DNA of 64,000 nucleotides from Macrostomum lignano (Eukaryota): NCBI GenBank assembly GCA_002269645.1, contig NIVC01000307.1:124001-188000 (forward strand). Reading direction: 5' to 3'. Below are positions 7,843-56,973 of the stretch, in pieces; position 1 is the first letter of the stretch, and every line of letters begins with the position of its first letter. The position numbers were made by a program, and so were the translations under genes. Under the pieces are notes generated by a model, which ran no database searches, was not told the DNA's origin, and saw only the letters and a program-made list of their open reading frames with translations.

Positions 7843-8650
7843 ATCTATAGATCCTCAATAGGGATAGCAGTGCTTATCTATAGATCCTCAATAGGGATAG
7901 CGGTGCTTATCTATAGATCCTCAATAGGGATAGCGGTGCTTATCTATAGATCCTCAATAGGGATAGCGGTGCTTACATGTATCTATAGATCCTCAATAGG
8001 GATAGCGGTGCTTATCTATAGATCCTCTATAGGGATAGCAGTGCTTATCTATAGATCCTCAATAGGGATAGCAGTGCTTATCTATTGATCTTCAATAGGG
8101 ATAGCGGTGCTTATCTATAGGTCCTCAATAGGGATAGCAGTGCTTATCTATAGATCATCAATAGGGATAGCGGTGCTTATCTATAGATCCTCAATAGGGA
8201 TAGCAGTGCTTATCTATAGATCATCAATAGGGATAGCAGTGCTTATCTATAGATCCTCAATAGGGATAGCAGTGCTTATCTATAGATCATCAATAGGGAT
8301 AGCAGTGCTTATCTATAGATCCTCAATAGGGATAGCAGTGCTTATCTATAGATCCTCAATAGGGATAGCAGTGCTTATCTATAGATCATCAATAGGGATA
8401 GCAGTGCTTATCTATAGATCCTCAATAGGGATAGCAGTGCTTATCTATAGATCCTCAATAGGGATAGCAGTGCTTATCTATAGATCCTCAATAGGGATAG
8501 CAGTGCTTATCTATAGATCATCAATAGGGATAGCAGTGCTTATCTATAGATCCTCAATAGGGATAGCAGTGCTTATCTATAGATCCTCAATAGGGATAGC
8601 AGTGCTTATCTATAGATCATCAATAGGGATAGCAGTGCTTATCTATAGAT
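7843..8650 (+). repeat. 33-bp minisatellite (atctatagatcctcaatagggatagcagtgctt), ~24 copies
   Basis: Direct reading. Confidence 0.97.
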
Positions 8651-9326
8651 CCATTTATACAGGCATATAGACATATAGACATCTATAGACATTTCATTGC
8701 AAATGGTTTCTGTAGAAGACAGACACATTGCCTAAAAGCGGCATCCACGCAGACAAAGCGTCCTTTCTGTCAGTATGCTCTAGACAAAAAATGAATCAAC
8801 ATTCTATAAATAAAATTTTAATTTCAATAGACACTCTCGCATGACTTAATCATTATCGTCGGTGCATGAACAACTGGAATAAAAATACTCGGAATTACTG
8901 CATATTCATTGCTGCAGTGTGCTCTCGAAAAATCTAATTTTTTAACGTGGATTTTTTTTCACTCAGTTTGTCTGAGTTTCTCAGAATCCCACATAAATGC
9001 ACTGACGATACGGAAAATACGCGTTTATCAACGGCGTCCGGGTCATTTCTAAGAAAACTCGAGTTGTAGCGCAACCTTCTGCTTCAGTTGCATCATGCAT
9101 CATAAATGTAACATAGAAAATCTGTGCTTTCACTGCGCTTCTTCGATCCAATTTCTCTTAATTTTAAAAGATGAAAATCAATTTTGGAAACGAAAAATTC
9201 TAAATTAAGTCGCGATTAAATCCGTTAAAAACACTTGAAAATCACAAATATCTGAAAGCACTTTTTCAAAGCAAGTGGAGGTGAGTCTACATGCAAAATA
9301 AAAGAATAATCAAATTTATCGGAAAA

Positions 9327-9546
9327 ACGCCCACCTGCCGACCCACCAACGCGCTCTGGCGCTATTGGCTAAGCTTACTCGAATTGTCTATAAATACACA
9401 CTTTTAAAAGCTTGACAGTATTCGCTTACACAATATCCAAATAACCACCGCTTTTTGAAAAAAACCCAACCGGTAAGTTACGAACCGTTATTAGGAGCCG
9501 TATGGGTTTGCCGTGACATTTTACAGGTACGTTTCACCTGTTTCAG
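9327..9546 (+). promoter_or_regulatory. Promoter, non-coding first exon and 5'UTR intron of peptide gene copy 1
   Basis: Conserved block acgcccacctgcc..caccaacgcgctctggcgctattggctaagct. Inverted CCAAT (attgg) at 9364-9368, TATAAATA at 9389-9396, donor gtaagt at 9473, acceptor tttcag ending at 9546. The same order is seen in copies 2 and 3. Confidence 0.75.
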
Positions 9547-9558
9547 ACTCTGGTCACC

Positions 9559-9915
9559 ATGAGAGCAGCAGCTGGTCCCATTGTCCTGCTCGTTCTCCTG
9601 TCGGCCATCTGTTATCAAGCCGTGAACGCTCGGCCTTTCAAGTCGCCATCGAACCGACACATTTTCGAGACCGACGACCAAGCAGAGCTCGTTCAGCTGA
9701 TGCGTCGACTGCTCATCGAGGATAAGATGCTCCAGCGTGAGCAGCAGCAGCAGAGGCAGTTCGAGGAGCACTTCGATCCATCTAAAAATCGTCCCTGGAA
9801 CGCCGCCGAGAATCCAGCTGGCTTCCTGGTGGTGCCGACACCGCCAGGCCCGATTGTGGAGCGTCGCTTCAAGCCGAGCGTCACCCCGTGTCTGCTGAAG
9901 TTTTGCACCTGGTAA
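9559..9915 (+). CDS. Secreted prepropeptide copy 1 (118 aa); predicted mature peptide FKPSVTPCLLKFCTW, urotensin II/somatostatin-related-like
   Basis: Signal peptide MRAAAGPIVLLVLLSAICYQAVNA, acidic/Gln-rich propeptide, dibasic RR and a C-terminal C-X4-C ring. Kozak-like caccATG; aataaa near 10013. Confidence 0.85.
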   Translation: MRAAAGPIVLLVLLSAICYQAVNARPFKSPSNRHIFETDDQAELVQLMRRLLIEDKMLQREQQQQRQFEEHFDPSKNRPWNAAENPAGFLVVPTPPGPIVERRFKPSVTPCLLKFCTW

Positions 9916-12032
9916 ACTTGGATCGGCGGAGAGCTCACGTCGATATTTTCTCTTTGAATCAATCGATCCTAAAATTATGCGATTAGCTGAATTTCCCAAA
10001 CAAATGAGGGCAATAAATAAAAAATTCCGCCAGCTTTTGTTCGAAAATCCTATATTTTAACGTCTTTCGCGGCAACACTTCATCGGTTTTACGTTTGACG
10101 ATTTAAAATAATAAATTTAATACAGCTTGAGAGACTTTGAAGCTCATATGCATTTTCTCGCTGAATTCTAGAGACTGCATGCGAGATGCAAAAAGTTGTT
10201 TGATTTAAATTATTTTTTACTCAGTTCTTCACTGTACAAACTGCATGGTTCACTGCAAATAGCCCTGCATGTACAGCTAGCTGGCACATGTACCGAAGGC
10301 TACTCAAGTAGAAGGACGGAAACTATACGTTTCTTGGAAAATTTTAGGAGACAGAATTTAGGAGACATGTAAAAAACATTACAAAGATAGGAAGTTCTCA
10401 TTTTTCAGCACAAAAATTGTTATTGCTTTTAATAGAGGAGAGATCCAGTGTTCCTCTTTCGATATGTCCTGCCTATTCTTATTGCTCTATTGATATTCAG
10501 AAAGCTTTCTGTTTAGAAAATTACGAACCTCGAGTTACCGCCTAGACAAAGAGAGGCCTTTCTCGCTAATCGTTATTTCAAATAGTCTGATTTAAAAGCA
10601 TGTTGCTGAGCAAACAACCGGCAATCTAAAACTACAGACAAAACCAGACGCAATGAGTGCAATTTACGGAATGATCACCTTCAGCTTTACTTTAGCTTTG
10701 ATTTTAACCCCTAACAATGTCAGAAGTTAAGGTGTCAGTGCCACTCTAGTTTGCGGATGAGGCTTCATTAATTAAGGGAAGCATAACTTAATACTTGTTT
10801 TACTATCGGCCCAGTCATCGATCGCAGACTCGACTTCCCCAAGCGTCCAGGAAACGTCGCCTCCTACCGTCGCATGAGTTGCCGATGCCAATTCTTCTAG
10901 GACCTAGCCCTGCAGGGGTCCCCAACCTGAGGTCCACAGGCCATTTCTGTGTGGCCTGAAGCCCTCTTTCCAATTTTTTTCATTGCATGCAGCCCGCCGA
11001 GTCGCCTGTATTCTTTGTGATTGCAGATATATGGCATTTAAGCCTGCGAATGACTATCCGCTCGTCGGCCAATTGAAGGCGAACGTCCAGGCTAAAAATA
11101 GACGCGAAGCATGGTTTTCCTTGATAAGAAGCGCACCAGTCATCTCCCTAAATTTGCATCGACTTTGAGAAACAGACATTTTTAATTTTTATGTACTTTT
11201 TGTGGCCCGCGTATCGTATCCAATGTCTGCCACTGAGTCCTAGCCAATCGGTCATCAAGACTTTCGAGACAACCAGGAGGTGCTCAGAACAGTACAGAAT
11301 ACTGATGTCGGTTTTAGGGGTGCCACGTCGTGCTAAGCACCAAGCTCCAAATTGAGCAACAGTAAACTAGCCGGAATTGCCTCTTTGATGAGTCTCTGAA
11401 CTTCCCAGAAAGTATCCCTCCACAGCAAGTCAGTCCACAGCCAGGGACACCAACAAGACTGACTCTAAAACCACGCCTTGAAAAAGCGCCCGCCAACAGG
11501 ATGATCTACCGTTCAGCACATCGCTCATGATTGATCAAATAAATATTTTACCCACTCTGCAAATGCTGGCGGTGCGCGGTTTACATGCACAGATATAGAC
11601 GACACGTACCTGCAACCTAGAAAAACTGTCAAGAGACCACACATTGTGGACAAGGCGGCGCAGACGTACATTCGACCTCTCAATGGCCTCTGCTGAATGG
11701 CACGCAGATACTTAAATACAACAGTTGTCCTTCTTCGGGCCAGTGCGATTCAGATATATGGACCTACAGTAACTTCAGTGAGGCATCTGAAGCTCATATG
11801 AACCGGACTAGACAGACAGAAAAGCATCGAATTACTGCATCGTCGACTTATGTACTCGTAGTAACAACTACAACTGCGTCGATATCATGCTTTATCTTAA
11901 TTTTTCCATTTCCAAGCTAATAAAAATGTAGGCAATGAGAAAATCATGTCGCTAAAAATCCAATTAACAAGCACTTGAAAAACAATTAGCTACCAGTCGA
12001 CTAGATCTCAAACAAAGATAATTTTTCTGGAG

Positions 12033-12261
12033 AACGCCCACCTGCCCGTCCACCAACGCGCTCTGGCGCTATTGGCTAAGCTAATTGTCTATAAATACAA
12101 CTGTTTTATGAGCTTGCAAAGATGCTAACACAATTTCCAATTTCCAGAGCACCCTTCTTAAAAAAACCAATCGGTAAGTTACGAACAGTTACTGCTGCAA
12201 CTGCCAGTAGCCGTATGTGTTTCTCATGTCGTTTTAAATCGGTACGTTTCACCTGTTCCAG
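12033..12261 (+). promoter_or_regulatory. Promoter and 5'UTR intron of peptide gene copy 2
   Basis: Same conserved block; attgg at 12071-12075, TATAAATA at 12090-12097, donor at 12174, acceptor ending at 12261. Confidence 0.75.
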
Positions 12262-12273
12262 ACTCTGGTCACC

Positions 12274-12630
12274 ATGAGAGCAGCAGCTGGTCCCATTGTC
12301 CTGCTCGTTTTCCTGTCGGCCATCTGTTATCAAGCCGTGAACGCTCGGCCTTTCAAGTCGCCATCGAACCGACACATTTTCGAGACCGACGACCAAGCAG
12401 AGCTCGTTCAGCTGATGCTTCGACTGCTCATCGAGGAGAAGATGCTCCAGCGTGAGCAGCAGCAGCAGAGGCAGTTCGAGGAGCACTTCGATCCATCTAA
12501 AAATCGTCCCTGGAACGCCGCCGAGAATCCAGCTGGCTTCCTGGTGGTGCCGACACCGCCAGGCCCGATTGTGGAGCGTCGCTCCAAGCCGAGCGTCACC
12601 CCGTGTCTGCTGAAGTTTTGCACCTATTAA
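12274..12630 (+). CDS. Secreted prepropeptide copy 2 (118 aa); predicted mature peptide SKPSVTPCLLKFCTY
   Basis: Differs from copy 1 at 5 codons; same architecture. Confidence 0.85.
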   Translation: MRAAAGPIVLLVFLSAICYQAVNARPFKSPSNRHIFETDDQAELVQLMLRLLIEEKMLQREQQQQRQFEEHFDPSKNRPWNAAENPAGFLVVPTPPGPIVERRSKPSVTPCLLKFCTY

Positions 12631-14166
12631 GCTTGGAGCCTCCGAAAGCTCAGAAAGATCGGGCACTCGAAGTGAAGTCTAACAAACTTATCTTAGCTAG
12701 TGTTGAACCCACCTGTCTTTTAATTTTAACTAATCGATCCTAAAGTTATAGAGTCGAATGTCCCCGCTCAATAAAAAAATCGTGCAAATTTTCTTTCCAG
12801 AAATCCCCTATTTTGAACAAGCCTTTTGTGGCCAAGTTTTATCGATCTTATCGGTAATGGCTTCAAATAAATCCTTTATTACATCTTGGGACAGAAAAAC
12901 TCTTGGTAGCATATTGTCTCTCTTAATTCGCTCGTAGCGAGATCGCAAACAGTGGTTTGATATTTTTTCATTTTTTGACTTAATTCTCTATCGTATAGAC
13001 TAGATGTAGCTCAGAATTTTGCATTTCAATGCATTTAGACTGTACGTATCGAGCCATAGTAGATGTACATGTGCTGGCACCCTGAATATGCAGCGCTTTG
13101 CTGACAATCGATTAACTATAATTTTAACCACTCTGGTGATGATGCACATGTATGCATGAGTATGAGTAATTGCGGCCTTGAACCATCCAAAGACAAGAAA
13201 ACACAAATTCACCGGTGGGATGTTTCTGCTCTCAGGCGCGCCCCAGGGTCGCCGCTTTTTTCCAAGTCAGTAGTTATCACGGCGCTCAGCCTTTAAGTAT
13301 TCCATCGGTGACACCTGGCATGGATACTATTTAACAGTCCAACTTTAGCATTATATTTTTCTCTAATCGATCACAAACATAGATAGATAGATACCTACCT
13401 ACCGACAAACAATTTTTAGTATAGTGGATTATATGTTAGTCCCCATGAACATGTAAAAAGCCAAGTCTGGCTTCTGCGGAATAAAGGTGTTTAAAGCAGC
13501 AAGCATGTACTCCCATCCTGATATCAATCTTGATAGCTTATTAAATTTCCCTCGTGTGTCATGGCCGAGCCGAGAATTGAATTGCCTTCGTTCTAATCTA
13601 AAATTGGGCCTTCAAAACGTCCAGATTCCAGAGATTTACAAGGAATAATCCCATCGAGCGCGCTTGCGATTCTATCAAGACGGTGTGAATCCAGCGACAT
13701 ATTCCGTCACAGGATGCACTTGTGGAACCCGACGCAGGCAGTCGCTTAAATTGTGTACGACAGTATCTGATTGGCCCCTCTACGAGTAGTCGGTTGTCGT
13801 CTTGGTATGGACTTGAAAAACCACATAGAAGCGATAAAAATTGGTAACTAACTAATAATAATGACGATAATTCCATTGCGCATTATGTAATTGGAAAAAA
13901 AACATTTTATTTAAATTATTTTACTATATTGGTAAATTAAAAAATGACGACCATCAATTGACTTAATTGACTTACAAAGTTCAGAGCGACAGATGCGTCA
14001 ATTTGATGCTTTCTCTTAGTTTTTTTTCAAGCTGATAAAAAATTAAATAACGAAAAAATGAAATGGCTCGATAATCAGTGTAAAAGCTGTTGAAAATTTT
14101 CAATTATCTGTCCATCAGTTAATAAAAAAGTGGAAAGTCTGTGGCTAAAAAATAATTTATCAGGAC

Positions 14167-14396
14167 AACGCCTACTTGCCGCCGGCCCACCAACGCGCTC
14201 TGGCGCCATTGGCTAAGCTTATTGTCTATAAATACAGTTGTTTTAGGCGCTTAACAAATTCGCCTACACAATTTTCTGATTAACACGCACTTCTTAAAGA
14301 AACCCAATCGGTAAGTTACGAACCGTTATTACTGCAACTGCCAGTAGCCGTATGGGTTTGCCGTGACATTTTACAGGTACGTTTCACCTGTTTCAG
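14167..14396 (+). promoter_or_regulatory. Promoter and 5'UTR intron of peptide gene copy 3
   Basis: Conserved block; attgg at 14208-14212, TATAAATA at 14227-14234, donor at 14311, acceptor ending at 14396. Confidence 0.75.
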
Positions 14397-14408
14397 ACTC
14401 TGGTCACC

Positions 14409-14771
14409 ATGAGAGCAGCAGCTGGTCCCATTGTCCTGCTCGTTCTCCTGTCGGCCATCTGTTATCAAGCCGTGAACGCTCGGCCTTTCAAGTCGCCATC
14501 GAACCGACACATTTTCGAGACCGACGACCAAGCAGAGCTCGTTCAGCTGATGCGTCGACTGCTCATCGAGGAGAAGATGCTCCAGCGTGAGCAGCAGCAG
14601 CAGAGGCAGTTCGAGGAGCACTTCGATCCATCTAAAAATCGTCCCTGGAACGCCGCCGAGAATCCAGCTGGTTTTCCAATGGCACCAACACCGCCAGGTC
14701 CGATTGTGGAGCGTCGCTTCAAGCCGAGCGTCACCCCGTGTCTGAGTAAGTTCTGCACCTGGTCAACTTAA
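14409..14771 (+). CDS. Secreted prepropeptide copy 3 (120 aa); predicted mature peptide FKPSVTPCLSKFCTWST
   Basis: Nearly identical to copy 1 over the first two-thirds and diverged in the last third. Confidence 0.85.
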   Translation: MRAAAGPIVLLVLLSAICYQAVNARPFKSPSNRHIFETDDQAELVQLMRRLLIEEKMLQREQQQQRQFEEHFDPSKNRPWNAAENPAGFPMAPTPPGPIVERRFKPSVTPCLSKFCTWST

Positions 14772-15607
14772 AGCCGCGAATAGAGAGAGCGAGAGATCGA
14801 GGATAGCGACAGATTGGGCAATCGCAGTGAAATCTAACACACTTTAATAACTACAAGCAAGAAATTGCGTTTTGATTTAATGAAGTTTAACCTGTCTGTC
14901 TTTTGATTTTTTTGGACTGAACGAATCGATCCTGAAATCTCCGGTTAGCTGCATGTTCCACTGGACTGAGAGAACAATAAACTAAATCCAATAAATCAAG
15001 TTTTGGTTTGAAAGTTCTCTTTGTAATAGTTATGTCTTTGTCTTATTACGAGTGCTGCCCAAAATACGTCCAAACAGTGCATTTTGAAATCGTGTCTAGA
15101 ACTTATTTTTATTGCATCTAAGAATAGATCAAATTTTCTAATTTCTCGTGCTTTTAAAATTATGCCAATATATTTGATTCCTAAAAATTTATGGCTAAAT
15201 ATCAAAATGCGTTATTGGTAGAGTAACACAAATTCGAGCACAGCAAATTCGAAAATGCAGCATCCCTCGGGCTGAACAACTTCTTTCATCTTCTGAATGA
15301 CTCATGCACACGGCTCACATATAGAGTGTATACAGCGGCGCTTACTTTCGCAAAGTAGTCTGATATGTACACTTTCTGTGCCTTTGAGGGCTGGCCCTTG
15401 TGCAATTATGAACCTCAGGGAAGTCCCCGGGCCATGAGACAAAAATTACAAACCACAAGTGCGTGAAAGTCAAGACGTGTTCGTTGCTGAGCTGCTCCGC
15501 CCCAAATTGCCAATGTTATAGTGGGGTTTTGTCTGCCCCTCAGTCGTTGGCAAGAGAGAGGGCTCGAGACAGCTCTTCATCCCCGATAGGAACAAGCTCT
15601 ACAATTA

Positions 15608-16800
15608 CGAGGGGCATTTCAAAAGTTCGTAGAAAATGACAGAAAGCAAGCAGATATCAAAAAGCGGGTTGTGACACATTAATGAGCATCTCAATCTGAT
15701 CTCTCAACGTAATCGCCACCGATTTCTATGCACGTTCGCATGCGCTGCAGCCAGCTATCAAAGCAACCCCTAAAATCAGCTTTTTCAATGGAGTTGAGCT
15801 GCTCACTCACAGCAGAAATCAGCTCATCATGAGTCTCAAACAACTTTCCACGCAGCAGCTGCTTGATTTTCGGAAATTTGCCAGCCTGCGCTGCTGGCCA
15901 GATGCGATGGAATTGAACACAGCGGGCAAGCAGCTGCATGGTCACGTACCAATCAGAGGTTACAGTGCGGCCTTGCTCAACAGGCACTGAGCCCACGATG
16001 CCTCTGGGCGAGAAGAAAATTGCGAACATGATTTTCCCAGCTGACCTCACCCGCTTCGCCTTTTGCGTAGGTGGGGCTCCTTTCAGTGACCAAACCATCG
16101 ACTGTGATTTAGTTGGCGGGTCGTACTGATGGAACCAGGCTTCATCACCTGTGACTATGTTCTGAAAGTTCGCAGATGCTCCATCTTTGAACTGATCCAG
16201 GAAATTTCTGCAGAAATCAATTCTCTGCTGCTTCTGCTCAGGCAAGAGGATTCGTGGCACCCATTTGGCAGCTTTCTTGGTGACACCAAGATCTTCGTGC
16301 AAGATCCGGCTCCAAATCGATTTGGCATCAATGCCAAGACTCTCCTCCATCCTCTCAATCGTCAGTCTTGCATCCTCGTTCAAAGCTGACTGCACAGCAG
16401 CCACATTCAATGAGTCTGTTGATGTTCTTGGACAACCTTCTCTTGGCTGGCTCATCAGCCAGATTGAAATGGCCGGCTCTATAAAGCGACCAAACCACTT
16501 GTTCACAGTGCTGAGGGATGGAGCTTCATCTTGCAGTACAGTCTTCATCTCAGCAGCAGCTTCATTTGCGCTAGAGCCTCGACGAAACAGGAACAGCATT
16601 ATGGCTCTTGACTGCTCCTTGGAGAACGCAGGAAATGCAGTGGGGGTTCAGAGTTTGATCGCAGATTTCTGGTGGCCATTTCAATCAATTTTGCTGAAAA
16701 TTTAGCTGCAGGCTATAGATTTATGAAATAGTATTTGTAAAAAGTTTCAAGGCCATAGCTTTATGCAAAGACGGCTTTTCTACGAACTTTTGAAATACCT
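15608..16800 (-). mobile_element. Mariner-family transposon, defective
   Basis: TA then left TIR cgaggggcatttcaaaagttcgtagaaaa; right TIR at 16776-16800 with its tip lost. ORF 15691-16599 has HTH, WVPRIL and IVTGDEAWFHQYDP, but the HDNA and YSPDL catalytic segments are missing. Confidence 0.9.
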
Positions 16801-17577: not shown

Positions 17578-20500
17578 TTGACATTAAACTTTAAAAACAA
17601 AAAGGACAAAAGCAAAAATTTCACTGTTATCAACTCTTACATACCACCAACATCTTCAAAATACTATGAAGAAGAGTCTTGGGAACAGTTAGCACTAATA
17701 CTTGATGCACATCATTCTGAAGAAAACATAATCCTGGTGGGAGATTTTAATGCACATACTTACAATACTGATCATATAGATTTGCATAGAATAAGCACTT
17801 TAAAGGCAAAAAATATCTCACTCTATAGGCAAAGCCAAGACAAAAAAACCTGTAAAAGTGGTAGATTATTAAACCAAATCACAAACTCATATAACTTGCA
17901 TATAATCAATGGTAGATCCCTATCTGATGCAACTGGAACACTTACCTTTATCTCCAAAACTGGTTCATCTGTAATTGACCTCTGTTTTGTCTCTAGCAAC
18001 TTACTTGAGCACTTTGAAGACTTTAAAGTAAGAAACCATACTTACCTTAGTGACCACAATCAAATTATACTCTCATTATCATGTAAATTCACAGCAGAGA
18101 TTACAGAAACAAAACAAGCAACCAATAACCAAAGAACAAAATTCCGGATATTAAGAAAACTAGATAAACCCACCCCACAACAAGAAAAACATATCAATTG
18201 CTTCTCAGATGATCTAAAGGATCTGGAGAATAAAATCCCAAATCTCGACATGCAAAACCCAGCTTTCATCCATAATTTAAGCAAGAAAGTTCAGCAAATC
18301 CAAAGTAAAATCACAGTAGAAACAAAAAACCCTCTCTGTTCAGCATTGCCACAATTTCTTAAAGACCTGAGAAATGCCACCAGGCATGCCAGCAGAAGAT
18401 ATAAGATGTTCCCCACAAGTAGCAACCTCGCATCCAAAATACAGCTTAAAAAAACATATGAAAAAAGCTTGATTTCTTGGAAACATGAATCAATACTGTG
18501 TGCAGAAAACATGATCAACCAGGCTTATATTCAAAATGATACAAGACAGCTTTGGCAATTACTGAAACCACATAACCGCCCCAATAACAATGCAGCAATT
18601 GACGAAAAATTTGTCATACACTTTCAAAATCTTGTAACTGAACAAGACAGCAGCATTAGACTAGCATACAATCTTCACCTTGACAACCCTATTCTGACTA
18701 ATTTAGAGGATTTCAATGCCCCATTCACCAAAGAAGAAGTTATAAAACATATTAAAAAGCTCAAAACCGACAAAGCACCTGGGCATGATAAAGTATATGT
18801 AGAAACACTCAAATACCTTGAAAACGAACTTACTGACCTCCTATGCTCACTTTTCAACGAAGCACTCAAACAAGGAACCTTTCCAACTAGTTGGATTACA
18901 AATACTCTTCATCCGATTTATAAAAACAAAGGCAGCAGTGCCGACCCCAACAATTACAGAGGAATCTGCATTCAACCAATTTTTGGCAAGCTCTTTTGCC
19001 AAATTATTAAATCCAGACTTGAAAACCTAGCATACGCTAACAATCTTATATCAAAATACCAATACGGTTTCAAGCCCAATCACAGCACAATCGACCAATG
19101 TTTTAATCTTTACAACATTATAAACCAGTCCATCTACAACAAAAATGAACTCTTTATCGGTTTTGTTGACTATGAAAAAGCCTTCGATAGCTTAAATCAA
19201 CCGACCCTTTGGCACAAAACGGATAACCAAGGTATTAAAGGTCAAATGACAGAACTTATCAAGAACATGCATAAAAATGCCTGTTTCATTCTAAAGAAAG
19301 ATGATGATGATGATGAAACCCAGCCAATCCCAATATCTAAAGGTGTTCTTCAAGGTAACCCTCTCTCTACCATCCTTTTTGAACTATATATTGACGACAT
19401 TGTTGAATATCTTGAACTCTCTAGCGCTAGGCGCTCTCTTACGAGATCTGCTTTCCCACTCATCCTGCTCTTTGCGGACGATCAAGCCATTCTAGCTAAA
19501 AACAAAGATGAACTTCAAGACACATTTACAACTATGGAAAATTACTGCAAGCAAAACTACTTGAAAGTTAATGCAAGCAAAACAAAGTTTATGCAGGGCA
19601 GTACCAGACAAAAAAATGACACAGAAAGTTTTGCTACAAAAATAATCTACGACAACCAAGAAATAGAGGAAGTAAATGAATTTAAATACCTGGGAATTAT
19701 TTTTGAACCAAAAAACAGCTTTAAAAAATGTATTGAACATCAAACTAAGCAGGGTTATTCAGCTATGTTTTCCCTACTCCACAAGGTAAAAAATACGTCC
19801 CTGGACATCACACTCATTCGCAGACTATTCGACGCGCTTGTCACCCCCGTTATCACGTACGGCTGTGAGCTCTGGGGCCCTCTGGCTACCATTTCTGAAA
19901 CAAAAGCTATTGATAACATTCAGCTGAAATTCTACAAATATCTCCTCAATCTACCAAAATTTGCTAGCAACAGTGTGATATCATCAGAACTTGAGCTTAC
20001 TCCAATCTCCCAACGAATTGCTAAAACCTATCTTACCTACTGGCTGAAGATTAGACATCAAAAACTTTGCCAAACGACACTAGAAATTTTCTACTCAAAC
20101 ACCAGCCAAAAAAATCCATGGAAAACAAATATACTAAAGAAACTGGAAAGTATAGACTTAAAAGCACTAACTGAAGATAAACTTTCCCAAAGCTTTAATA
20201 ACGAGAAATACCTAGTGAAAAAGCACCTCAAGATACACAGAGAAAGAGAACTTAGCCAAAAGCTAGAGAATCAGCAACATATTAAACTCTATAAAAACGC
20301 CTATCTCTACAAAAAAATCTGCAGGCCTGACCTTTCAGATTACTTTCCATGCACTTTTAGAAACAAAAAATTCCTAACAACCCTCCTAAAACTGAAATGC
20401 GAAATTACACCCAACATTTTCTCTCATGAACCATGTAGACTGTGTGGAGCGAGAAATGGTTCCGATATCCTACACTACTTGACCGAATGTCCACAAACCG

Positions 20501-21070
20501 AAAAGTTCAGAAAAAAATACTTCTGTCAGTACCTCCTAAATGACAAGCAAGTACACAAGTTAGGATATGCTACAAATGAAAAAAGAGTCAGAAAAGAGCT
20601 CACTGGTGTAGCTAAAATATATGAAGTCATGAATAGCTAAAACAGTTATGCAAACTGAAACAGACATATCAGCAGTGAAATAAATCCGCCTTTCCCATTT
20701 TTAATTTCCTACTTAATTAGCACTTAATTAGTATTTAATTAGTTTCCTATCTAATACCTATTTAAATCGTCGTCATTCGCTTAACGTAAAGTCCCTTCGA
20801 AGTTCGTTTTTGTTCATTTTTCTTTCGTTTTTACTTTTATTAACTGCAATACTTTTTTTAACTCCTTGCTTTTTCTTTCGCTTCGTTAGTCGTCCAAGTA
20901 TCGTTAATAACTTTTCCGCGTTCTTTCAAATACCATTTTGCAAAACTCGTACTAATCATAATTAAATAACTAGTGCTAAAATATTGTCTCCTATTCCTGA
21001 AGCAATCTTAAATACATAGAAATATATTGGCCAAACAGGCTTCTTGCCTGAGCCAACTTACTACTACTAC
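17578..21070 (+). mobile_element. 5'-truncated AT-rich non-LTR retrotransposon (APE + RT + C-terminal Cys/His knuckle) with (TAC)4 tail
   Basis: Uninterrupted ORF 17578-20640 containing LVGDFNA, SVIDL, SDH, KAPGHD, QYGF, DYEKAFD, GVLQG, FADD, YLG, ITYGCELWG and CRLC..HYLTECP. It starts mid-endonuclease. Tail at 21059-21070. Clade not determined. Confidence 0.95.
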
Positions 21071-23906: not shown

Positions 23907-26900
23907 TCAGGGAGGTCTGCCGGTCCTGTCTGCAGCGTTGTCTTCGGTGGGGAAGACGGAGGCTCGCTTGGTGGCCCGGAGGAACCGGATGAGCCGTGGG
24001 ATGTTCTCGGGCCGGCAAACGTCGTCCAGGGACGGGTTGGGCCCGAGGTGGTTGAGCCGGTCTCGGTTGAAGGCCGGGCAGTAGCAGACGAAGTGCATGG
24101 CATCTTCATTCTCGAGGCTGCAGAAGGGGCAGAGTTCACTCCGGCGAACACATCGGAGGAAGCAGTGCCTGGCAAAGCAACCGTGACCTGTGAAGGTCAT
24201 AGTGAGAGCGCGGATATCTTTTCGATTTTGATTCAAAAGGATTCTCCGCAGCTTGAGGGACGGATTGGGCACTGCCGCACGAGATTGGCGGCAGTTGGAG
24301 ATACCATCCCATCTGCGCAAGTGCAGGATGTCCGCCCAGTCGTTAATCTGACGATTAATGACTGTGGCGGGGATGGGGGCCAGGGGCACGGGGCCAAGGG
24401 GCGAGCCGGAACAGCCCGCCTTAGCGAGGGAGTCGGCGAGCTCGTTACCTTTGAAGCCGGCGTGTCCTGGGATCCACGTGAGCCGGACGGTGTTCCTCCG
24501 AGCCAGCTTGTTGAGCTGCCCGATACAGTCGCGGACTGTTCGGGAGTTCGTAGTGGTGTGACACAGGGCCTGTAAAGCGGCCTGGCTGTCAGAGTGGAAG
24601 AAGATTCTTCTGTCCTTGAAGTCCTTGCGGTGGAGCTCAGCTGCACAGGAGCTGATGGCAAGGACTTCATTCTGGAAGACGCTGGAGAGTCTGCCAGTGT
24701 GTTGGGCGTGAGTAGCAATCACGCGGCCGTTGATAAGGATGCAGACTCCAAAGCCGGATAAACCGTCTTTGGAGGATCCGTCAGTGAAGCAGTGAACCTC
24801 CTGAGGGGCCCAGCTGTCGTTGGCGTTCTCCCTGGAGGGGATTGTGACCTTGAAGCGTTGGTAGAGGTTGAGGGAGCGCGGTTCAGCGTCCGAAAGGACA
24901 GCCGCACTCCCACTCTCCTCCAGAACTTTAAGGCACAGGTCAGAGTGCGGCAGGAGCTTGCGCTTCGCCATCGCTCTTTGTGGCTTGAAGCTAACACCAG
25001 CCTCGATGAGCCGGCGGGTGGTTTTAGCAGCCTCGCGACGGACAAAGATGTCCAGAGGCGGGAGGCAGAGAAAGGCGTTGAGGCCGTCAAAGGGAGCAGA
25101 GAGCGGGGCATTCAGGATCATGCGGCACGCACGTCCCTGCACCTTTTTGAGGGCTTCGTGGCAGGTTTTAATCTGCAAGGCGCTGGTCCAGACCAGGCCG
25201 GCGTATGTAACGGCCGGTCGGACCATTGCGGTATAGATCCACCAGAGACGCTTTGGGGTGAGGCCCCAGGTGGTGCCGACGGCTCTGCGCAGCTGCGCAA
25301 GAATCGCGAGGGCTTTTTTGGTTTTGGCCTGGACGTGGGTGGACCAGCTCAGCCGGTGGTCCAGCGTAACGCCGAGACACTTGGTTTGCTTGCAGGATGG
25401 AATTTCCACCCCGTAAAGCTTTAGTGGGCGAATACGCCAGTTTACCCTGCTGGTGAACATGATCGCGACAGTTTTGGTCTCGAGAGCCTGAGGCCGCACC
25501 TGTCCGCCCAACGTTCAGCAGAGCGAATGAAGTTTTGCAAAAGATCTCTAAGGGTTTCAGGTGACGGTCCGGATGCCACGGCTGTGACATCATCGGCGTA
25601 ACCGACCTTGAGGATGGGGTCAAGATGGCTGTCCTGGAGGAGCTCATCGATGACCATGTTCCAGAGAACTGGAGAGAGGACACCGCCCTGGGGGCTGCCT
25701 TTGCAGACGGTTACCGTCCGTTGGTGGCCCAACAGGTGTGCGGTGGCAGTACGGTGGCTGATCATATACATGATCCACCGGGTGAGGTGCGAGTGGGTTC
25801 CTCTAGCACGTAGAGCTCTGTCAAAGGCCTCAAAGAGGACATTATCGAAGGCTCCAACAATGTCGAGGAAGACAGCGAGAGCGTAGCCATTACCAAGAAC
25901 GGCTTTCTCCAGCATGTCAACCAGAACGTGAAGCGCGCTCTCCGTGGACCTGCCTGCCCGAAAGGCATGCTGGTTCTCACTGAGCGGCTTGTTCTTCAGT
26001 TCCACAGAGAGGAGGCGCCAGAGCACCAGTCTCTCTAACAGCTTCACCAATGAGGAGGTGAGGCTAATTGGTCTGAAGGATTTAATGGACCGGTAGTCCG
26101 GTCGGCCAGGCTTGGGGATAAAGACCACCTTGGCCTCGGTCCAGGATTTCGGAACAAAGCCGAGCACAATGCAGGCTTTCAGAAGCCGGCAAAGGTTCCG
26201 CAGGAAACCGGTGCATTTCACCGCCTCCCGCAGGAAGGCTGGCACAACGCCGTCCGGTCCTGGGGATTTGAAGGGTTTGAAGGAGGAGACAGCTTTAGTA
26301 ACGCGGTCCTCCGTGATGATTGAGTCAGCCAGTACGTGTCCGCCCACTGAGTGGTCAGGGGGCCGGGCCTAGCTGGCTCGTTCGGGAAAAACGCTGTTAG
26401 CATCGCTTCCAGTGTTTCTCCTGGGTTCTCAGTGAGCGAGCCGTCGGCTCTCTTGACTGAGGAGAGTTTGGACATTTTGTCCAGGGTGAGGGCTTTAACG
26501 ATTCTGGAGGTGGGGCGGGAGCCCTCAAGTTCCTCACAGTATTCGCGCCACTTGTTGGTTTTGGCGTTCCTAACCTGCCTCTTGAACTCGTGGATAGAGT
26601 TCAGGTAGGCGGTTTGGTCGGCCGGGTTTTTAGTTTTTTGGGCCCTGCGGTGAAGCCTTTTGGCTCTGCGACGGAGGTCGCCAAGCTGCGGGTTCCACCA
26701 TGGGGCCGACTGTTTGCCTTTATATGCCTTTAGTGGGCATGAGGCTTCGAAGGCAGCAGTGAGCGAGTCCGTAAGTGCGGCCGCAAATTCATCTGCTTCT
26801 TCGCAGGTGTTGATGGAGACTGGAGCGCTAGTGCAACGATAGGTCTCCTCCAGGGCAAGCCTGAAGGCGGTCCAGTCGGTATTCCTAGCATTCCGTTTCC

Positions 26901-27609
26901 AGTAAAGCTGGCCTGCGTTACGGGCGCTGGCCAGCGTGAAAGAGATGAACTTGTGATCGGAGAGGGACGCCTCAGGAAGCACCCGCCATTCCCTAGTGCT
27001 CAGGAAGAGCCTGGGCGTGGCGAGGGTGGCATCCAGCACCTCCGATCGGCGTCCGTTATTGAAGGTAGGGGTACTACCCGAGTTACAGAACTCAAGGGTT
27101 GTAGTAGCAATATAAGCCAGGAAGTCTTCACCTCTCTGGTTTATATCAGAACTGCCCCAGTGGGTGTGGTGGGCATTGATGTCACCTGCCACGAGCAGCT
27201 CATAGTTTCTGGTGGAGCAGAGCTCGACCAGTGTGACAAGCTCTACTGGGATCATCTCGCCGTCGCCCGGTAGGTAAACCGAGGCGATGAGGGTAGTCCT
27301 CCCAGGGAGTATGTCTTCAGACTGGATGACACAGATGTCCCTGGTGGACAGGTCTGATCTGAGCCATGCGTTAATAGAACTGGACACCATGATGCAGGAT
27401 CTTGGTGCCAGGTTTCCCTCCCGGGTACCAGCGGTTAAACACTGGTAGCCGGTGGGGACATGTTGGGGGCTGCCCCTAAGCGTCCAAGGTTCCTGGATAA
27501 GGATAATCCCTGGCACGTATTGGTCAGTGTGCTTCAAGAGGTTGACTGAAGCAGCAATGCTGTGCTGCAGGTTGACCTGCAAGCAGTGGATGCCCTGGGA
27601 GACAGTCAT
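23907..27609 (-). CDS. LINE ORF2 polyprotein, split into three frames by two apparent 1-nt deletions (~26360 and ~25481)
   Basis: APE (QVNLQH, IQEP, GDINAH, SDH), RT (KSPGPDG, QHAFR, FLDIVGAFD, GSPQG, GYADD), RNase H (FTDGS, SDSQAAL, WIPGHAGFKGNELAD) and CPFC..H..C. Confidence 0.9.
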
Positions 27610-27611
27610 GT

Positions 27612-29141
27612 CTACTGTCCAGGGGAGGAGAAAAGCAACTCATTCTCAGCCTCATCGGTGAGAGTTGAGTCGCCAATTTCCATTGGCTCAGGCTCAGCCG
27701 CCTCCCCAGCCGCCGCGGAGGCGGACACGGCGCCCACGGCAGGTGAGTCACCTAGCCGCGCTACACCGCCCTCCTCCCCAGCGACTGGGGTACGGCTGCT
27801 GCCTTCGCCTTGCGCCCCGCCGTCGGGAGTCTGAGCTCGGCCGGCAGCGTCCTCCTGGTGGTAATCCCACCAGTTGGAAGGCTGAGCCGTGCCGTCGTCC
27901 AGTTCCCTCGGCTGGCTTTCAGTGTTTTTTCGAGCGGCACGAGTCTGCTCGAGGTGAAGTCTCAGAGACTGAGCTTCGTCAAGTGCGCGCTGGATTAGAC
28001 CGGACCGCCGGCTACTGCGGGCGGGTCTACGTCCGCGCGAGGCGGACTCAGCAGCGCGAATAGCCTTGTTAGGCTCGGGATCGGGTTGCTGCTGCCGCTT
28101 GGCCGGCGGGGCATGAGCCCCAGCTCCGGGAGCGGCGCGCTTCCCGTCTTTCTTGGTCTCCACCTTGCCCTCCTCACAGCGGAGGATGGTCAGTTGATGG
28201 AGACCAAGGTGGAGGTTTGTGCCGTGCGGTAGCCGCTTGGCCCATCCCTCCGTCAGGCCGAGGATGACTGTGGCCCCGGTCGTGCCCTTGCGGACCGTGC
28301 TGTGGTACACAAGACCACTGGCGTCGAGATCCGGGTGCCGCTTGAGCAGGAGCTGCCGCAGCTGCTCCCCGGACTTGATTGCACTGTCGGCCGGGACCCA
28401 AATCCGATGGCGGATGGTCTTCGGCCGCTCGCTCTCCAAGGCGAAGGTCAGCTGGCCCAGGTCGCTGTGCCAGTCGAACTTGGGCAGCTGATCCCGCAGG
28501 AGCTGGGTGCTCTCCTCGGATTTGCACCACAGTAGGATGCACCCGTTCGCCTTGGTGGACTTGACGATGTCCACGAAGGCGCCCTCCAGGGTTAGATTGA
28601 GCAAGCCCTCGTCGATGGTACGCCACGCGACGTCGAGCTGCTCGGGCGTCAGGTCGAAATCCCCGCCGAGGATCATCACGGCGGGTTGCAGCGGCTGCTT
28701 GACCTTGGACGCGTAGGACTCGGAGGTCTTGAGCGGGGCCGCTTTGTCTTTGGAAGGCGGTAGGCCGGCAGGGTTGCCCCCCTGAGAGCCCGAGGACACG
28801 GCGGTTCCTGACGGCCCAGCCGCGCCACCGGACTCCCCAGAGGGCCTCCCCGCTGCGGTGGCTCCCGAAGGCCTCACCGCGGCTTGCGTGCCCTCCTCAG
28901 ACGCAGCAGCAGCCCGCTTCTCCTGCCGCTTACGGTTGCGGCGGATGTTCCGCTGTCGTCGAGACTCGGCCGTGCGCGGTCGGCTAGACTGGCGGCCAGG
29001 GTGATCGGCGGCAGCGTCAGCTGGCCCGGTTGGACCAGGTTGGGCGTTGGTGCTACCAGTGGTAGCTACCGGAGCGGCTGATCCCGGTGAGCCAGAGGCG
29101 ACCGGGTCAGTTTCTTTAGGGATGGTGGCGTTAGTGGCCAT
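27612..29141 (-). CDS. LINE ORF1 (gag-like nucleic-acid-binding protein), 509 aa
   Basis: Intact ORF directly upstream of ORF2, with basic/disordered ends and a central globular segment. No CCHC knuckle seen. Confidence 0.85.
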   Translation of the reverse strand: MATNATIPKETDPVASGSPGSAAPVATTGSTNAQPGPTGPADAAADHPGRQSSRPRTAESRRQRNIRRNRKRQEKRAAAASEEGTQAAVRPSGATAAGRPSGESGGAAGPSGTAVSSGSQGGNPAGLPPSKDKAAPLKTSESYASKVKQPLQPAVMILGGDFDLTPEQLDVAWRTIDEGLLNLTLEGAFVDIVKSTKANGCILLWCKSEESTQLLRDQLPKFDWHSDLGQLTFALESERPKTIRHRIWVPADSAIKSGEQLRQLLLKRHPDLDASGLVYHSTVRKGTTGATVILGLTEGWAKRLPHGTNLHLGLHQLTILRCEEGKVETKKDGKRAAPGAGAHAPPAKRQQQPDPEPNKAIRAAESASRGRRPARSSRRSGLIQRALDEAQSLRLHLEQTRAARKNTESQPRELDDGTAQPSNWWDYHQEDAAGRAQTPDGGAQGEGSSRTPVAGEEGGVARLGDSPAVGAVSASAAAGEAAEPEPMEIGDSTLTDEAENELLFSSPGQ

Positions 29142-31215
29142 AGCTGAAAAGCGGGGGAGGGCTACTCGTTATGCGAGTTGAGTACCCGACTGGCCGACAC
29201 CTCAAGCCAGCCGGTTTGAAAAAAGGACCGCTAGCTACCGGACTACTCCCCGGCCTTCCAGCCCATCGGCACGGTCAAACACCTTAGGCATTAGAGGGTA
29301 CGTTAAGCAGTACCACGGCCTGCAGGCTGGTGAGCCAGACCCGCATACCCAAATTCGGCCGAAGCCACTGGATAGGGTCGCCAGCGCCGGAGCCCAGTCT
29401 GTCCAGCAGCCCTAGGGTCTGCCTTGAACACACGCGGGGACGAGTACCCCTGGGTCGACTTGCGAGACAGCGTGAGGGAGTCTGCGGCTGCCAGAGGCAA
29501 ATAGAGGGTGCAGACCTCCCACCAGCCTTGACCTGCTGAAGATGGGGGCAGGCGTGAAGCATCGCAGACCTTAGCTCGTAGGCCTAGTCTGTCTCATACT
29601 TCACTGGCATGCTGAATACGCCTTCGCGTGCACGAGGGGTGTCCAAAAAGTAGTGATACTTTTGGCCGCAGCTCTTGTTCTATAGCTTCCTGTGATTTAA
29701 AATTTTATGAACTGATAGTGACAAATCTCTTCTACAGACTGCTTTTTGAATTTTTAAAATTGATACCAGAGAACAAAAGTTATACCCACAAAAGTAACAG
29801 TACCTGTACCATAGAGTTACACAAACTATATCAAAATTTATGATAGTCAACTCTGCACTTATTCATTAAGAAGGCATCGATAAATGTCTTGTTTAAGCAA
29901 TACCAAGGCCCAATTGCAAAATGATGCTCACTGTGACTGACTGAAATTTGTCTATGGACAGAATCATGCGCAGAAAAATAAAGCATTAAATTCATTACTT
30001 TACTTGCAAACAGAGGAGCTTGCATTTTGCAATTGATTTCATTGCCCATACTCGACAACACACATGGATGTGCACTCAGTTGTTGCTCAGCAAAGTACTA
30101 TCTTCACTCTTTGGGATGCTGGCCATAGTGCCTCAGAAATTCACGCAAAACTTTGCTCTGTGCATGGATCCTCTGTGGTCAGCAAAATGACAGTTTATCA
30201 ATGGATGGAGCAGTTCAGCGAGGGAAGGACTGACTTGGCAGATCAGCATCGGACAGGGCGGCCATACGTTCATTGACCTGATATACTGGCAGACTCCATT
30301 CTGAATCTTCTTGATGAGGACTCCCAAATGACCATTAGAGAGATCGCTGACAGGTTGGACAAGCGAAATCAACAATTCATCGAAGCTTACTTGGCATGGA
30401 TCTCGTGAAGCTCAGCCTATAATTTGTGTAACTCTATGGTACAGGTACTGTTACTTTCATGGGTATAACTTTTGTTCTCTGGTATCAATTTTAAAAATTA
30501 AAAAAACAGTCTGTAGAAGAGATTTGCTTCTATCAATTCATAAAATTTTAAATCACAGGAAGCTATAGAACAAGAGCTATGGTTAAAAGTATCACTATTT
30601 TTTGGACACCCTTCGTATTAGGTAGATAGCTGCCATGTATGCAATTAAAGCACTAGGTGGATAGCCACCATGTATGCAATTAAAATACTAGGTAGATAGT
30701 TGCCGCCAATTTTGCAGACGATGGGGTGTATGCTGGAAAATTCCGGCATACACTTGATTTCCGTGGCGTACACTAGCGTACATTTCTTGGCTATGTACAG
30801 TGTGGCGTACAGTGTGGTGTATGGCAACTGGCATAGAAATTAATATAAAGAATTTTGTGCTTTTTCTATGTTAAGTTATTTCAAAAACCTTTTTTTCTGC
30901 TAATATTTTCTCATTTACCAATCATTTTAATTATTGGAATTGTCACAACAATCGTCATGTCGTTATCAATTTTTTGTAGTTTAAATTTAAATTTAAATAT
31001 TCGTTGATTTTTTTACCATTTTTTAAGTTGGCGTACATTTAAAATCTGTTGGCGTACAATTGAAAATTCAATAAAAATGTGGCTGGTGTACACAGAAAAC
31101 CTTCCGCAATTTGGGTTGCTGCATATGCAAGCTCTAAAAATATTATTTACATTGAGTAGTTTCAGTCTAATTAGTCTATTTTTTATATTTTATAATTATG
31201 TCAAAGTATACTATG

Positions 31216-33801: not shown

Positions 33802-33918
33802 AACCAATCAAAAGTCAAAGCCATTGTCTAAAAAATTATTTTAAAAAATCTGAACTCGCCTGTCCAATAGGGATTAACTTGCCGAGTGTAGATTTTCATC
33901 GCCGTTTTATGTATAAAA
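33802..33918 (+). promoter_or_regulatory. CCAAT/TATA promoter of the 34026 gene
   Basis: ccaat motifs near 33803 and 33863; TATAAAA at 33912-33918, about 110 nt upstream of the ATG. Confidence 0.5.
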
Positions 33919-34025
33919 ACTGAAATTTTCTCACGTCCTGCACCCAGTTCGTTTGATTTAGTTACGGCTCAAAATATACAGCTGATAAAATTATTTGTAA
34001 AAAAATTCGAAGCCCAAGTTCTATA

Positions 34026-34358
34026 ATGAAGTGTTTTACCTTCTATCTGTTGGTTGCTATTTCCCTGGCTGCTGCTGTTACTGCTCTGCCAGCTACCGCC
34101 GTTGTATCTGGCAGCAACGGTCATCGCAGCGGCGCCAGCAGCAGCGCTAGCGGCAGCTCCTCCGGACCCGTGATGAACGATGAGCAGTTTGAGACTATGT
34201 GGGAGCAGTTCATGGAGTCCATGCAGCGTCAGGAGCGAGAGCGGGAGCTGCGACAGCAGCAGGGTCGCCTTGGCTACCGCCCAGCCGGTCAGGCCATGGA
34301 TCGTCACCACGACATCAACAATCTTGACATCGGCTCGCTGCTGAAGGGATTGGACTAA
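34026..34358 (+). CDS. Secreted 110-aa protein, probable peptide precursor
   Basis: Strong signal peptide MKCFTFYLLVAISLAAAVTA, Ser/Gly linker, acidic/Gln helical segment and C-terminal HHDINNLDIGSLLKGLD after R. A GC-rich coding island in AT-rich flanks. Confidence 0.8.
   Translation: MKCFTFYLLVAISLAAAVTALPATAVVSGSNGHRSGASSSASGSSSGPVMNDEQFETMWEQFMESMQRQERERELRQQQGRLGYRPAGQAMDRHHDINNLDIGSLLKGLD

Positions 34359-56902: not shown

Positions 56903-56973
<71 letters not shown>

Follow-up and report, generated by a model that had tools for sequence, protein, structure and literature searches.

A 64,000-nucleotide stretch of the Macrostomum lignano genome (contig NIVC01000307.1, positions 124,001 to 188,000 of the forward strand; hereafter the window) carries three tandem genes, copies A, B, and C, each encoding a short secreted precursor that ends in a peptide with two cysteines. 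We read the trio as functional tandem duplicates that encode divergent, non-amidated secreted ligands of the Lys-centred hexapeptide-ring class, a reading to which we give about as much credence as doubt. An earlier reading made from the letters alone (the sequence-only reading) had described three tandem genes with a signal peptide, a propeptide, an RR pair, and a C-terminal peptide, and the open reading frame (ORF) list and the alignments returned exactly these ORFs. The coding sequences (CDSs) are as follows.

9559-9915, + strand: copy A CDS, 118 aa (ORF list, protein alignment); signal peptide 1-24, propeptide 25-101, RR 102-103, mature peptide FKPSVTPCLLKFCTW at window positions 9868-9912
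12274-12630, + strand: copy B CDS, 118 aa, mature peptide SKPSVTPCLLKFCTY (ORF list, protein alignment)
14409-14771, + strand: copy C CDS, 120 aa, mature peptide FKPSVTPCLSKFCTWST (ORF list, protein and DNA alignment)

The three precursor proteins are 96% identical by protein alignment, and their C-termini read ...IVERR followed by FKPSVTPCLLKFCTW (A), SKPSVTPCLLKFCTY (B), or FKPSVTPCLSKFCTWST (C). The mature peptides comprise 15 to 17 aa, with the stop codon directly after them and no Gly amidation signal. The ring is CLLKFC in copies A and B and CLSKFC in copy C; T-W follows it in copies A and C and T-Y in copy B. The KPSVTP stretch, the ring Cys residues, the Lys, and the Phe are identical in all three copies. 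All copies begin with MRAAAGPIVLLV[L/F]LSAICYQAVNA before RP (also given as MRAAAGPIVLLVLLSAICYQAVNA before RP). The signal peptide named in the sequence-only reading was borne out by a hydrophobic core (Kyte-Doolittle hydropathy of ~3.0 around residues 8-17) and by small residues at the predicted cleavage site (Val at -3 and Ala at -1). The next ~77 residues form a propeptide that leads to IVE-RR.

Just one other dibasic pair occurs, within a predicted helix and followed by Leu (LM-RR-LL), in copies A and C; in copy B it is LR. Dibasic sites that lie within a helix and are followed by Leu are poorly cleaved during prohormone processing. Judged from the letters, the RR directly before the Cys-x4-Cys peptide is the single plausible dibasic site. 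AlphaFold, supplied with the three-sequence alignment, modeled only helices at residues 6-24 (signal) and 33-71 (propeptide, pLDDT 75-83), with residues 72-118 disordered and no globular fold, so that the predicted layout is that of a prohormone and not of a folded domain. The peptides are mildly cationic and hydrophobic (isoelectric point [pI] of ~8.9, grand average of hydropathy [GRAVY] of 0.1-0.55), with predicted [M+H]+ values, including the disulfide, of 1767.90 (A), 1684.84 (B), and 1929.92 (C).

The motif C-x-hydrophobic-K-hydrophobic-C is expected by chance ~0.46 times per window over six frames. The ring motif found here goes beyond chance because it follows RR, stands at the extreme C-terminus, and occurs in paralogous signal-peptide ORFs with promoter, splice, and polyadenylation (polyA) motifs in common. 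A motif scan and BLASTN found no further ring-motif ORFs and no fourth family copy in the window. Residues 25-31 of copy A (9631-9651, RPFKSPS) resemble residues 102-108 (9862-9882, RRFKPSV), which may reflect the remnant of an internal repeat or chance.

Each copy is preceded by the promoter block CCACCAACGCGCTCTGGCG-C[T/C]-ATTGGCTAAGC, which contains an inverted CCAAT box and is followed by TATAAATA (alignment, repeat finder, and motif scan). A candidate splice donor, G/GTAAGTTACGAAC (the slash marks the junction), is fully conserved ~75-80 nt downstream of TATAAATA in each copy, and the candidate acceptor CCTGTT[T/C]CAG/ACTCTGGTCACCATG, kept in all three copies, lies 74-88 nt past the donor. 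These elements and the polyA signals were placed as follows.

9337-9396, + strand: copy A core promoter with block CCACCAACGCGCTCTGGCGCTATTGGCTAAGC, inverted CCAAT at 9364, and TATAAATA at 9389-9396
12044-12097, + strand: copy B core promoter with inverted CCAAT at 12071 and TATAAATA at 12090
14181-14234, + strand: copy C core promoter with inverted CCAAT at 14208 and TATAAATA at 14227
9473-9546, + strand: copy A candidate intron in the 5' untranslated region (5'UTR), 74 nt, G/GTAAGTTACGAAC ... CCTGTTTCAG/ACTCTGGTCACCATG
12174-12261, + strand: copy B candidate 5'UTR intron, 88 nt
14311-14396, + strand: copy C candidate 5'UTR intron, 86 nt
10012-10017, + strand: copy A AATAAA, 97 nt past the stop codon (motif scan)
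12770-12775, + strand: copy B AATAAA, 140 nt past the stop codon (motif scan)
14976-14995, + strand: copy C AATAAA signals, 205 and 219 nt past the stop codon (motif scan)

The CDS runs uninterrupted from ATG to stop in each copy, and the sole candidate intron is the one in the 5'UTR. Each gene thus probably has two exons, the first non-coding and the second holding the CDS, with a short 5'UTR intron between them. The alignable unit is ~620 nt around each gene (BLASTN), and start-to-start spacings are 2715 nt and 2135 nt. The span of 9327-14771 assigned to the trio in the sequence-only reading covers the copy A promoter to the copy C stop codon; it leaves out the 3'UTR and polyA signal of copy C, which reach ~14990.

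Sequence identity among the copies varies sharply along this unit. It is 90-95% in the promoter core, 55-67% in the 5'UTR exon, 85-99% in the intron, 98.9-99.6% in codons 1-87 of the CDS, and 46-62% in the 3'UTR. For codons 88-118, identity is 96.8% for A-B, 86% for A-C, and 83% for B-C. The proportion of synonymous differences (pS) is 0-0.017 in codons 1-87, and the UTRs are near saturation. UTRs near saturation beside a near-identical stretch of codons 1-87 point to old duplicates whose CDS has been kept by gene conversion, constraint, or both. On this sequence evidence, the trio clearly appears to comprise real, maintained genes. In the stretch of copy C that escaped conversion (codons 89-118), the proportion of nonsynonymous differences (pN) is 0.07-0.09 versus a pS of 0.18-0.39, which indicates purifying selection. 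Copies A and B differ by six nucleotides, with six nonsynonymous and no synonymous differences; the neutral probability of this pattern is ~0.2, which is not significant. The sequence-only reading had called the family "diversifying," which the tests did not bear out: pN is below pS where copy C escaped conversion, and the A-B excess (6 versus 0) is not significant. Positive selection was considered and rejected, since the tests were not significant. In copy C, the ancestral stop codon TAA became TCA, which adds Ser-Thr to the peptide, and the Leu113Ser replacement required three base changes (CTG to AGT).

A mechanism can be proposed from these features. The TATA/CCAAT promoter would drive each transcript, made up of a short non-coding exon, a 74-88 nt intron, and an exon with the whole CDS. 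Translation would yield a precursor of ~118 aa, from which the signal peptide would be cut off after Ala24. A disulfide is predicted between Cys111 and Cys116, and a proprotein convertase would cleave after Arg102-Arg103. This would free a cyclic free-acid peptide of 15-17 residues with the ring C-L-[L/S]-K-F-C and a C-terminus that coincides with the end of the ORF. By analogy with known peptides of the ring class, the secreted peptide most likely acts on a peptide G protein-coupled receptor (GPCR).

By structure, the predicted product falls in the class of peptides whose Lys-centred ring stands C-terminally in a short precursor, which includes chordate urotensin II (UII) and UII-related peptide (URP), SSRP-like ("apUII") peptides of spiralians, CNMamide of arthropods, and NLP-56 of nematodes. 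It is not canonical in any of these families: it has Leu or Ser in place of the aromatic residue before Lys, no amidation signal, and an intronless CDS. The ring formula C-x-hydrophobic-K-hydrophobic-C fits CNMamide (C[HY]FKIC), NLP-56 (CRFKFC), and the window peptides alike.

The sequence-only reading had placed the peptides in the UII/somatostatin family, with the pharmacophore Trp replaced. The background on which it relied is sound. The UII core ring is CFWKYC, and Aplysia apUII is FKSPMQSRSGGMSLCLWKVCPAAPWLIS (Romanova 2012); the pattern C-x-W-K-x-C of mollusc SSRP-like peptides and consomatins is also correct (Koch 2022; Romanova 2012). Part of the assignment stands, namely ring size, Lys at ring position 3 with an aromatic residue next to it, and the C-terminal, non-amidated layout. 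The remainder does not: the trio lacks Trp-Lys, the phase-0 proregion intron, and any Pfam match, and CNMamide and NLP-56 fit the ring equally well. The Trp position is indeed taken by Leu in copies A and B (Leu-Lys) and by Ser in copy C (Ser-Lys). Relative to the invariant UII hexapeptide CFWKYC, only Cys, Lys, and Cys are identical, with Phe versus Tyr after Lys and Leu-Leu or Leu-Ser versus Phe-Trp before it. As in vertebrate UII/URP, the peptide is non-amidated and occupies the extreme C-terminus of its precursor after a basic site (ERR, peptide, stop), with the same ring size and Lys followed by an aromatic residue. Thr-Pro lies upstream of the ring as in human UII, as the sequence-only reading had pointed out; an Asp separates Thr-Pro from Cys in human UII only, and Thr-Pro abuts Cys here. 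Pfam models Urotensin_II and Somatostatin were unmatched at E<=10 by the full precursors and by their C-terminal 26-28 residues, a profile comparison that went against the assignment, with the qualification that these models are short and vertebrate-based and have low power here. The window also differs from vertebrate genomes in its CpG observed/expected ratio (0.67-1.0). Somatostatin, cortistatin, and allatostatin-C were excluded by loop size, which is 4 here versus 10-15 (SS, FWKT) or 6 (ASTC, Asn/FxP). A hidden Markov model (HMM) of AST-CCC scored 1.4-3.8 bits on the window precursors.

Spiralian SSRP-like peptides come closer in some respects. Protostome SSRP-like peptides and consomatins carry Trp-Lys in a four-residue Cys loop with I, V, or L before Trp, as in Conus Cr-SSRPL1 (SGGMSLCLWKVCPAAPWLVS) and Capitella Ct-SSRPL1 (pQASSGAQICIWKVCPPTPW-OH) (Koch 2022). 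In the window peptides, too, the loop has four residues, the first aliphatic and the third Lys; a Pro-rich flank, a Trp after the ring (in A and C), and a free-acid C-terminus are likewise shared (compare CLWKVC...PW and CIWKVCPPTPW with KPSVTP before C-L-x-K-F-C in the window). They differ in having Leu-Lys (A, B) or Ser-Lys (C) where SSRP-like peptides have an invariant Trp before Lys, and the post-ring tail is longer in SSRP-like peptides (PAAPWLIS). A phase-0 proregion intron is common to all SSRP/ASTC genes (Koch 2022). Introns of phase 0 and phase 1 divide SSRP-like genes into three exons, whereas the window CDS is intronless and so has no phase-0 proregion intron.

Two ecdysozoan peptide types, CNMamide and NLP-56, share the ring formula. 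The ancestral arthropod CNMamide is GSYMSLCHFKICNM-NH2, with GSYQPSLCYFKICNM-NH2 in cockroach and VMCHFKICNMamide in crab. Nematode NLP-56 (Y[AT]CRFKFCRI[FY]D) is non-amidated and located at the extreme C-terminus; it has been noted as SSRP-like but with FK instead of WK (Koch 2022). The isoforms a, b, and c of C. elegans nlp-56 differ at the C-terminus. Like CNMamide, the window peptides have a C-x4-C ring with Lys at position 3 between hydrophobic residues, and their short precursor carries them at its C-terminal end behind a dibasic site; its propeptide leads from a helix into a QQQQ run and an acidic stretch. A Pro/Ser-rich stretch before the ring is shared with a cockroach CNMamide isoform (GSYQPSLC...). 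Unlike the amidated CNMamide (Gly and RKR after Met), the window peptides run to the stop codon, with Leu or Ser versus Phe at ring position 2, Thr-Trp or Thr-Tyr versus Asn-Met in the post-ring tail, RR versus KR at the cleavage site, and a precursor of 118-120 aa versus 127-193 aa. Of the CNMamide motif C-x-F-K-[IL]-C-N-[MIL] with Gly and basic residues, only ring size and Lys were found. NLP-56 resembles the window peptides in standing, non-amidated, at the very C-terminus of its precursor behind a dibasic site, in its C-x4-C ring with K-F-C at the end, in a precursor length of ~100-120 aa, and in the A-[AE]-L-I helix of its proregion; it differs at ring positions 1-2 (Arg-Phe versus Leu-Leu or Leu-Ser) and in the tail (RIFD versus TW). 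An NLP-56 HMM gave no score on the window precursors.

Profile comparison by hhalign gave P=0.0038 for the window peptides versus CNMamide, P=0.022 (probability 2%) versus NLP-56, and P=0.003 for CNMamide versus NLP-56, with only the ring aligned in each case. By sequence, the window peptides thus appear about as near to CNMamide and to NLP-56 as those two are to each other. The window propeptide (DDQAELVQLMRRLLIEDKMLQREQQQQRQFEEHFDP) can be aligned with CNMamide proregions (e.g., REEMAALVELIQQYQKEWQQQQGVEEDP and DEVASLLYQMMQHAARQQSQEQQQQRQQ). An HMM of the CNMamide proregion, built from 14 polyneopteran sequences, scored 13.1 bits on the window propeptide (empirical p of ~0.001); 2 of 5000 shuffled sequences scored as high, as did 5 of 5000 in which QQQQ and other doublets were kept intact, and the reversed sequence scored 1.5 bits. 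With the same HMM, 12 control precursors (six AST-CCC, four NLP-56, and human SST and UTS2) scored -2.1 to +1.6 bits versus 11.5-12.1 bits for the window. Human SST and UTS2 served as negative controls only and were scored with the HMMs of the CNMamide propeptide and of NLP-56. When phmmer ranked 27 sequences, CNMamide took the first seven places. The Polyneoptera paper comes with 24 supplementary files, of which 21 are family FASTA files, and the string EQQQQR occurs solely in the one for CNMamide. We treat this propeptide likeness as a lead suggested by sequence and not as membership in the CNMamide family.

Insect CNMamide GSYMSLCHFKICNMa and the mollusc SSRP-like peptide apUII (SGGMSLCLWKVC...) have MSLC-x-[FW]-K-[IV]-C in common. 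Ecdysozoa, which have CNMamide and NLP-56, reportedly lack SSRP-like genes, and the reported phyletic ranges of the two groups are complementary. In the literature searched, the terms CNMa and urotensin co-occur in one paper, which names them only in its abbreviation lists and draws no link between the families.

Within the ring class, a divergent CNMamide/NLP-56-type origin of the trio seems slightly favored over a UII/SSRP-like one because the weak CNMamide propeptide match is the sole likeness beyond the ring; an independent origin is possible. Several results weigh against reading the trio as divergent ligands with such an origin. The propeptide match depends on polyQ, as only 4.9 of its 13.1 bits were left once QQQQ was masked, and the full-length CNMamide HMM gave 4.6 bits, a value reached by 118 of 3000 signal-preserving shuffles. 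Arthropod CNMamide is near-invariant from decapods to insects (C[HY]FKICNMamide), and a CNMamide paralogue with its propeptide kept and its peptide so altered would be unusual. In the termite, the CNMamide CDS is spread over five exons, with alternatives for the last one, versus one coding exon here. Variation among the copies is concentrated in the mature peptide (3 of 15 variable residues versus 6 of 103 in the rest, Fisher p=0.09; 4 of 16 with the Ser-Thr extension included, p=0.03), a pattern that is atypical of a conserved neuropeptide and commoner in exported effectors. Finally, no precursor homologue was returned by a word-indexed search of 5.8 billion proteins or by a full HMMER scan of 1.84 billion representatives, and metagenome scans, one at the protein level and one with a degenerate DNA pattern for K-P-x-x-T-P-C-x-x-K-F-C-T, gave no match.

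Other searches were likewise negative: exact-protein look-ups for two peptide precursors and two neighboring ORFs, comparison of the precursors with PDB sequences, Pfam, and NCBIfam, and a full-text literature search for peptide substrings and ring variants. These homologue negatives are weak evidence because an intact LINE ORF2 in the same window itself matches at <=33% identity among the 5.8 billion proteins, this genome and its relatives being absent from the collections. The absence of homologues therefore says little about how restricted the family is.

Three other explanations were weighed. The genes could be true UII/SSRP-like members, that is, lineage-specific apUII-type paralogues in which Trp changed to Leu or Ser, perhaps by way of an intronless (retro)copy, with a duplicated or shifted SSTL/UT-type receptor. 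The ring CLWKVC of apUII and Cr-SSRPL1 is close to C-L-L-K of the window, and Ct-SSRPL1 ends in ...CPPTPW-OH, a free acid with a terminal Trp like ...CTW of copy A. Likewise, apUII starts with FKSP after KR and the window mature peptide with FKPS after RR (the window propeptide itself starts with RPFKSPS), and both peptides stand at the extreme C-terminus of precursors of similar length (112 aa for apUII versus 118 aa). Some annelid SSRP-like genes have lost one intron. The missing phase-0 proregion intron counts against membership. Also against it is the WK motif, which is common to all SSRP-like peptides and retained even in the hyperdiverse consomatins (Koch 2022) but missing from all three copies. 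In addition, the apUII precursor has two further internal KR sites that release extra peptides, whereas the window precursor has none, and the Pfam Urotensin_II and Somatostatin models remained unmatched even at E<=10. We regard this explanation as unlikely. The peptides could also be exported effectors (antimicrobial, toxin, pheromone, or seminal) that are expressed in glands and whose ring is convergent with, or mimics, neuropeptides. Precedent exists in consomatins, SSRP-like genes that were recruited as toxins and in which signal and pro regions are conserved and the mature region is variable (Koch 2022). Tandem copies with strong TATA-box promoters, mildly cationic and hydrophobic peptides, residue differences that fall preferentially within the mature peptide, and the lack of homologues in very large protein collections, consistent with a young lineage-restricted family, would all suit such a role. 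The six of six nonsynonymous A-B differences point the same way, but the selection tests were not significant and pN is below pS in the unconverted part of copy C. Moreover, there are only three copies, in which the ring Cys, Lys, and Phe and the KPSVTP stretch are invariant, and 15 residues with a net charge of +2 make a short and weakly charged candidate for a membrane-active antimicrobial. An effector role is in our view unlikely, yet a serious rival in view of the tandem copies, the TATA promoters, and the variable mature region.

The ORFs could, finally, be non-functional, the product of chance, pseudogenes, or cargo of a repeated element. The window is rich in repeats and transposons, the precursors have no external homologue, and long antisense ORFs run across the loci:

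9478-9999, - strand: antisense ORF over the copy A gene, 173 aa
12106-12666, - strand: antisense ORF over the copy B gene, 186 aa
14316-14621, - strand: antisense ORF over the copy C gene, 101 aa

Since the antisense ORFs lack signal peptides and vary in length from copy to copy, we rejected them as genes in their own right; they look like a side effect of GC-rich codon usage in the sense CDSs (GC content at third codon positions [GC3], 0.63-0.68). Despite a flank divergence of 35-55%, no sense ORF is disrupted, every difference preserves the reading frame, and the promoter, splice, and polyA motifs persist. The ~620 nt that can be aligned per gene contain no terminal repeats or transposon ORFs. 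We consider a non-functional origin highly improbable.

If the trio does encode ring-class ligands that are expressed and bioactive, the peptides would be natural ring analogues with Leu or Ser in place of the pharmacophore aromatic residue and could serve as probes of what receptor recognition needs. If the peptides are instead gland effectors, they would be another case of a hormone-like peptide recruited for export. A broader proposal, which we think quite improbable, is that the trio is an undescribed, aromatic-less branch of one ancient family uniting UII/URP, SSRP-like peptides, CNMamide, and NLP-56. It is prompted by the MSLC-x-[FW]-K-[IV]-C pattern common to CNMamide and apUII and by the complementary phyletic ranges. 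Having lost the aromatic pharmacophore residue, such a branch would point to a neofunctionalised ligand whose receptor is either its own or retuned. If these families are one, the question of whether the trio is UII-like or CNMa-like largely dissolves. In sequence, the trio lies between SSRP-like peptides and CNMamide/NLP-56, and its placement could help test whether the two groups have a common origin.

The window as a whole is gene-poor and eukaryotic. Its CpG observed/expected ratio, 0.67 overall and ~1.0 across the peptide genes, excludes a vertebrate origin. The 64 kb yielded neither an Rfam family nor a tRNA, and a Pfam scan of the remaining ORFs of >=62 aa returned only Ig and mariner helix-turn-helix (HTH) domains. 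Micro- and minisatellites are very dense: Tandem Repeats Finder (TRF) reported 31 rows of tandem repeats, some for the same array, with units of 4-52 nt (and some rows of longer period) in up to 118 copies; these give rise to many spurious long ORFs on both strands. A purine-rich, (GAGAGGA)n-like tract at 56277-57622 has a GC skew of +0.7. The other features of the window, with examples of the satellite arrays, are as follows.

574-1046: satellite array (TRF)
7843-8652: satellite array (TRF)
41031-42812: satellite array (TRF)
45170-46172: satellite array (TRF)
59027-60101: satellite array (TRF)
62120-63662: satellite array (TRF)
34026-34358, + strand: secreted-protein gene, 110 aa ORF (MKCFTFYLLVAISLAAAVTA...), promoter at ~33900-34000
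36309-36755, + strand: single-exon Ig ORF with signal peptide, one Ig domain, and transmembrane helix
44221-44991, + strand: paralogous single-exon Ig ORF of the same layout
15691-16599, - strand: Mos1/mariner-type transposase remnant
30037-30273, + strand: Mos1/mariner-type transposase remnant
40333-40557, - strand: Mos1/mariner-type transposase remnant
17578-20640, + strand: AT-rich (36% GC) long interspersed nuclear element (LINE) ORF2, 1020 aa, intact
23907-29141, - strand: GC-rich (58-59% GC) LINE amid sequence of 36-44% GC

The product of the ORF at 34026-34358 combines a signal peptide with a Ser/Gly-rich stretch and a helix rich in Q/E/R; it lacks a dibasic site and matched neither Pfam nor NCBIfam. 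The GC3 of this ORF, 0.67, is like that of the peptide genes, and upstream of it are two CCAAT boxes and TGTATAAAAA. The two Ig ORFs have a juxtamembrane V-[IY]-[KN]-MPSY in common. Their Pfam Ig matches are weak, and their nearest PDB entries are LRRC4/NGL-type Ig domains (E=2e-4); the ORF at 36309-36755 may continue by splicing. Among the mariner remnants, one 302 aa ORF has an HTH_48 domain and a partial DDE domain, and the fragment at 30037-30273 matches Pfam HTH_48; the fragment at 40333-40557 is HTH-like by eye and had no Pfam match. The AT-rich LINE ORF2 combines an endonuclease, a reverse transcriptase (RT), and a C-terminal CxxC...H...C motif, its best relatives being <=33% identical, and from its sequence this LINE may have been recently active. 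The GC-rich LINE comprises ORF1 (509 aa, 27612-29141) and an ORF2 in three overlapping frames, with the endonuclease at 26218-27609, the RT at 25442-26347, and the RT C-terminus and RNase H at 23907-25511. This split of ORF2 therefore points to frameshifts near 26218-26347 and 25442-25511.

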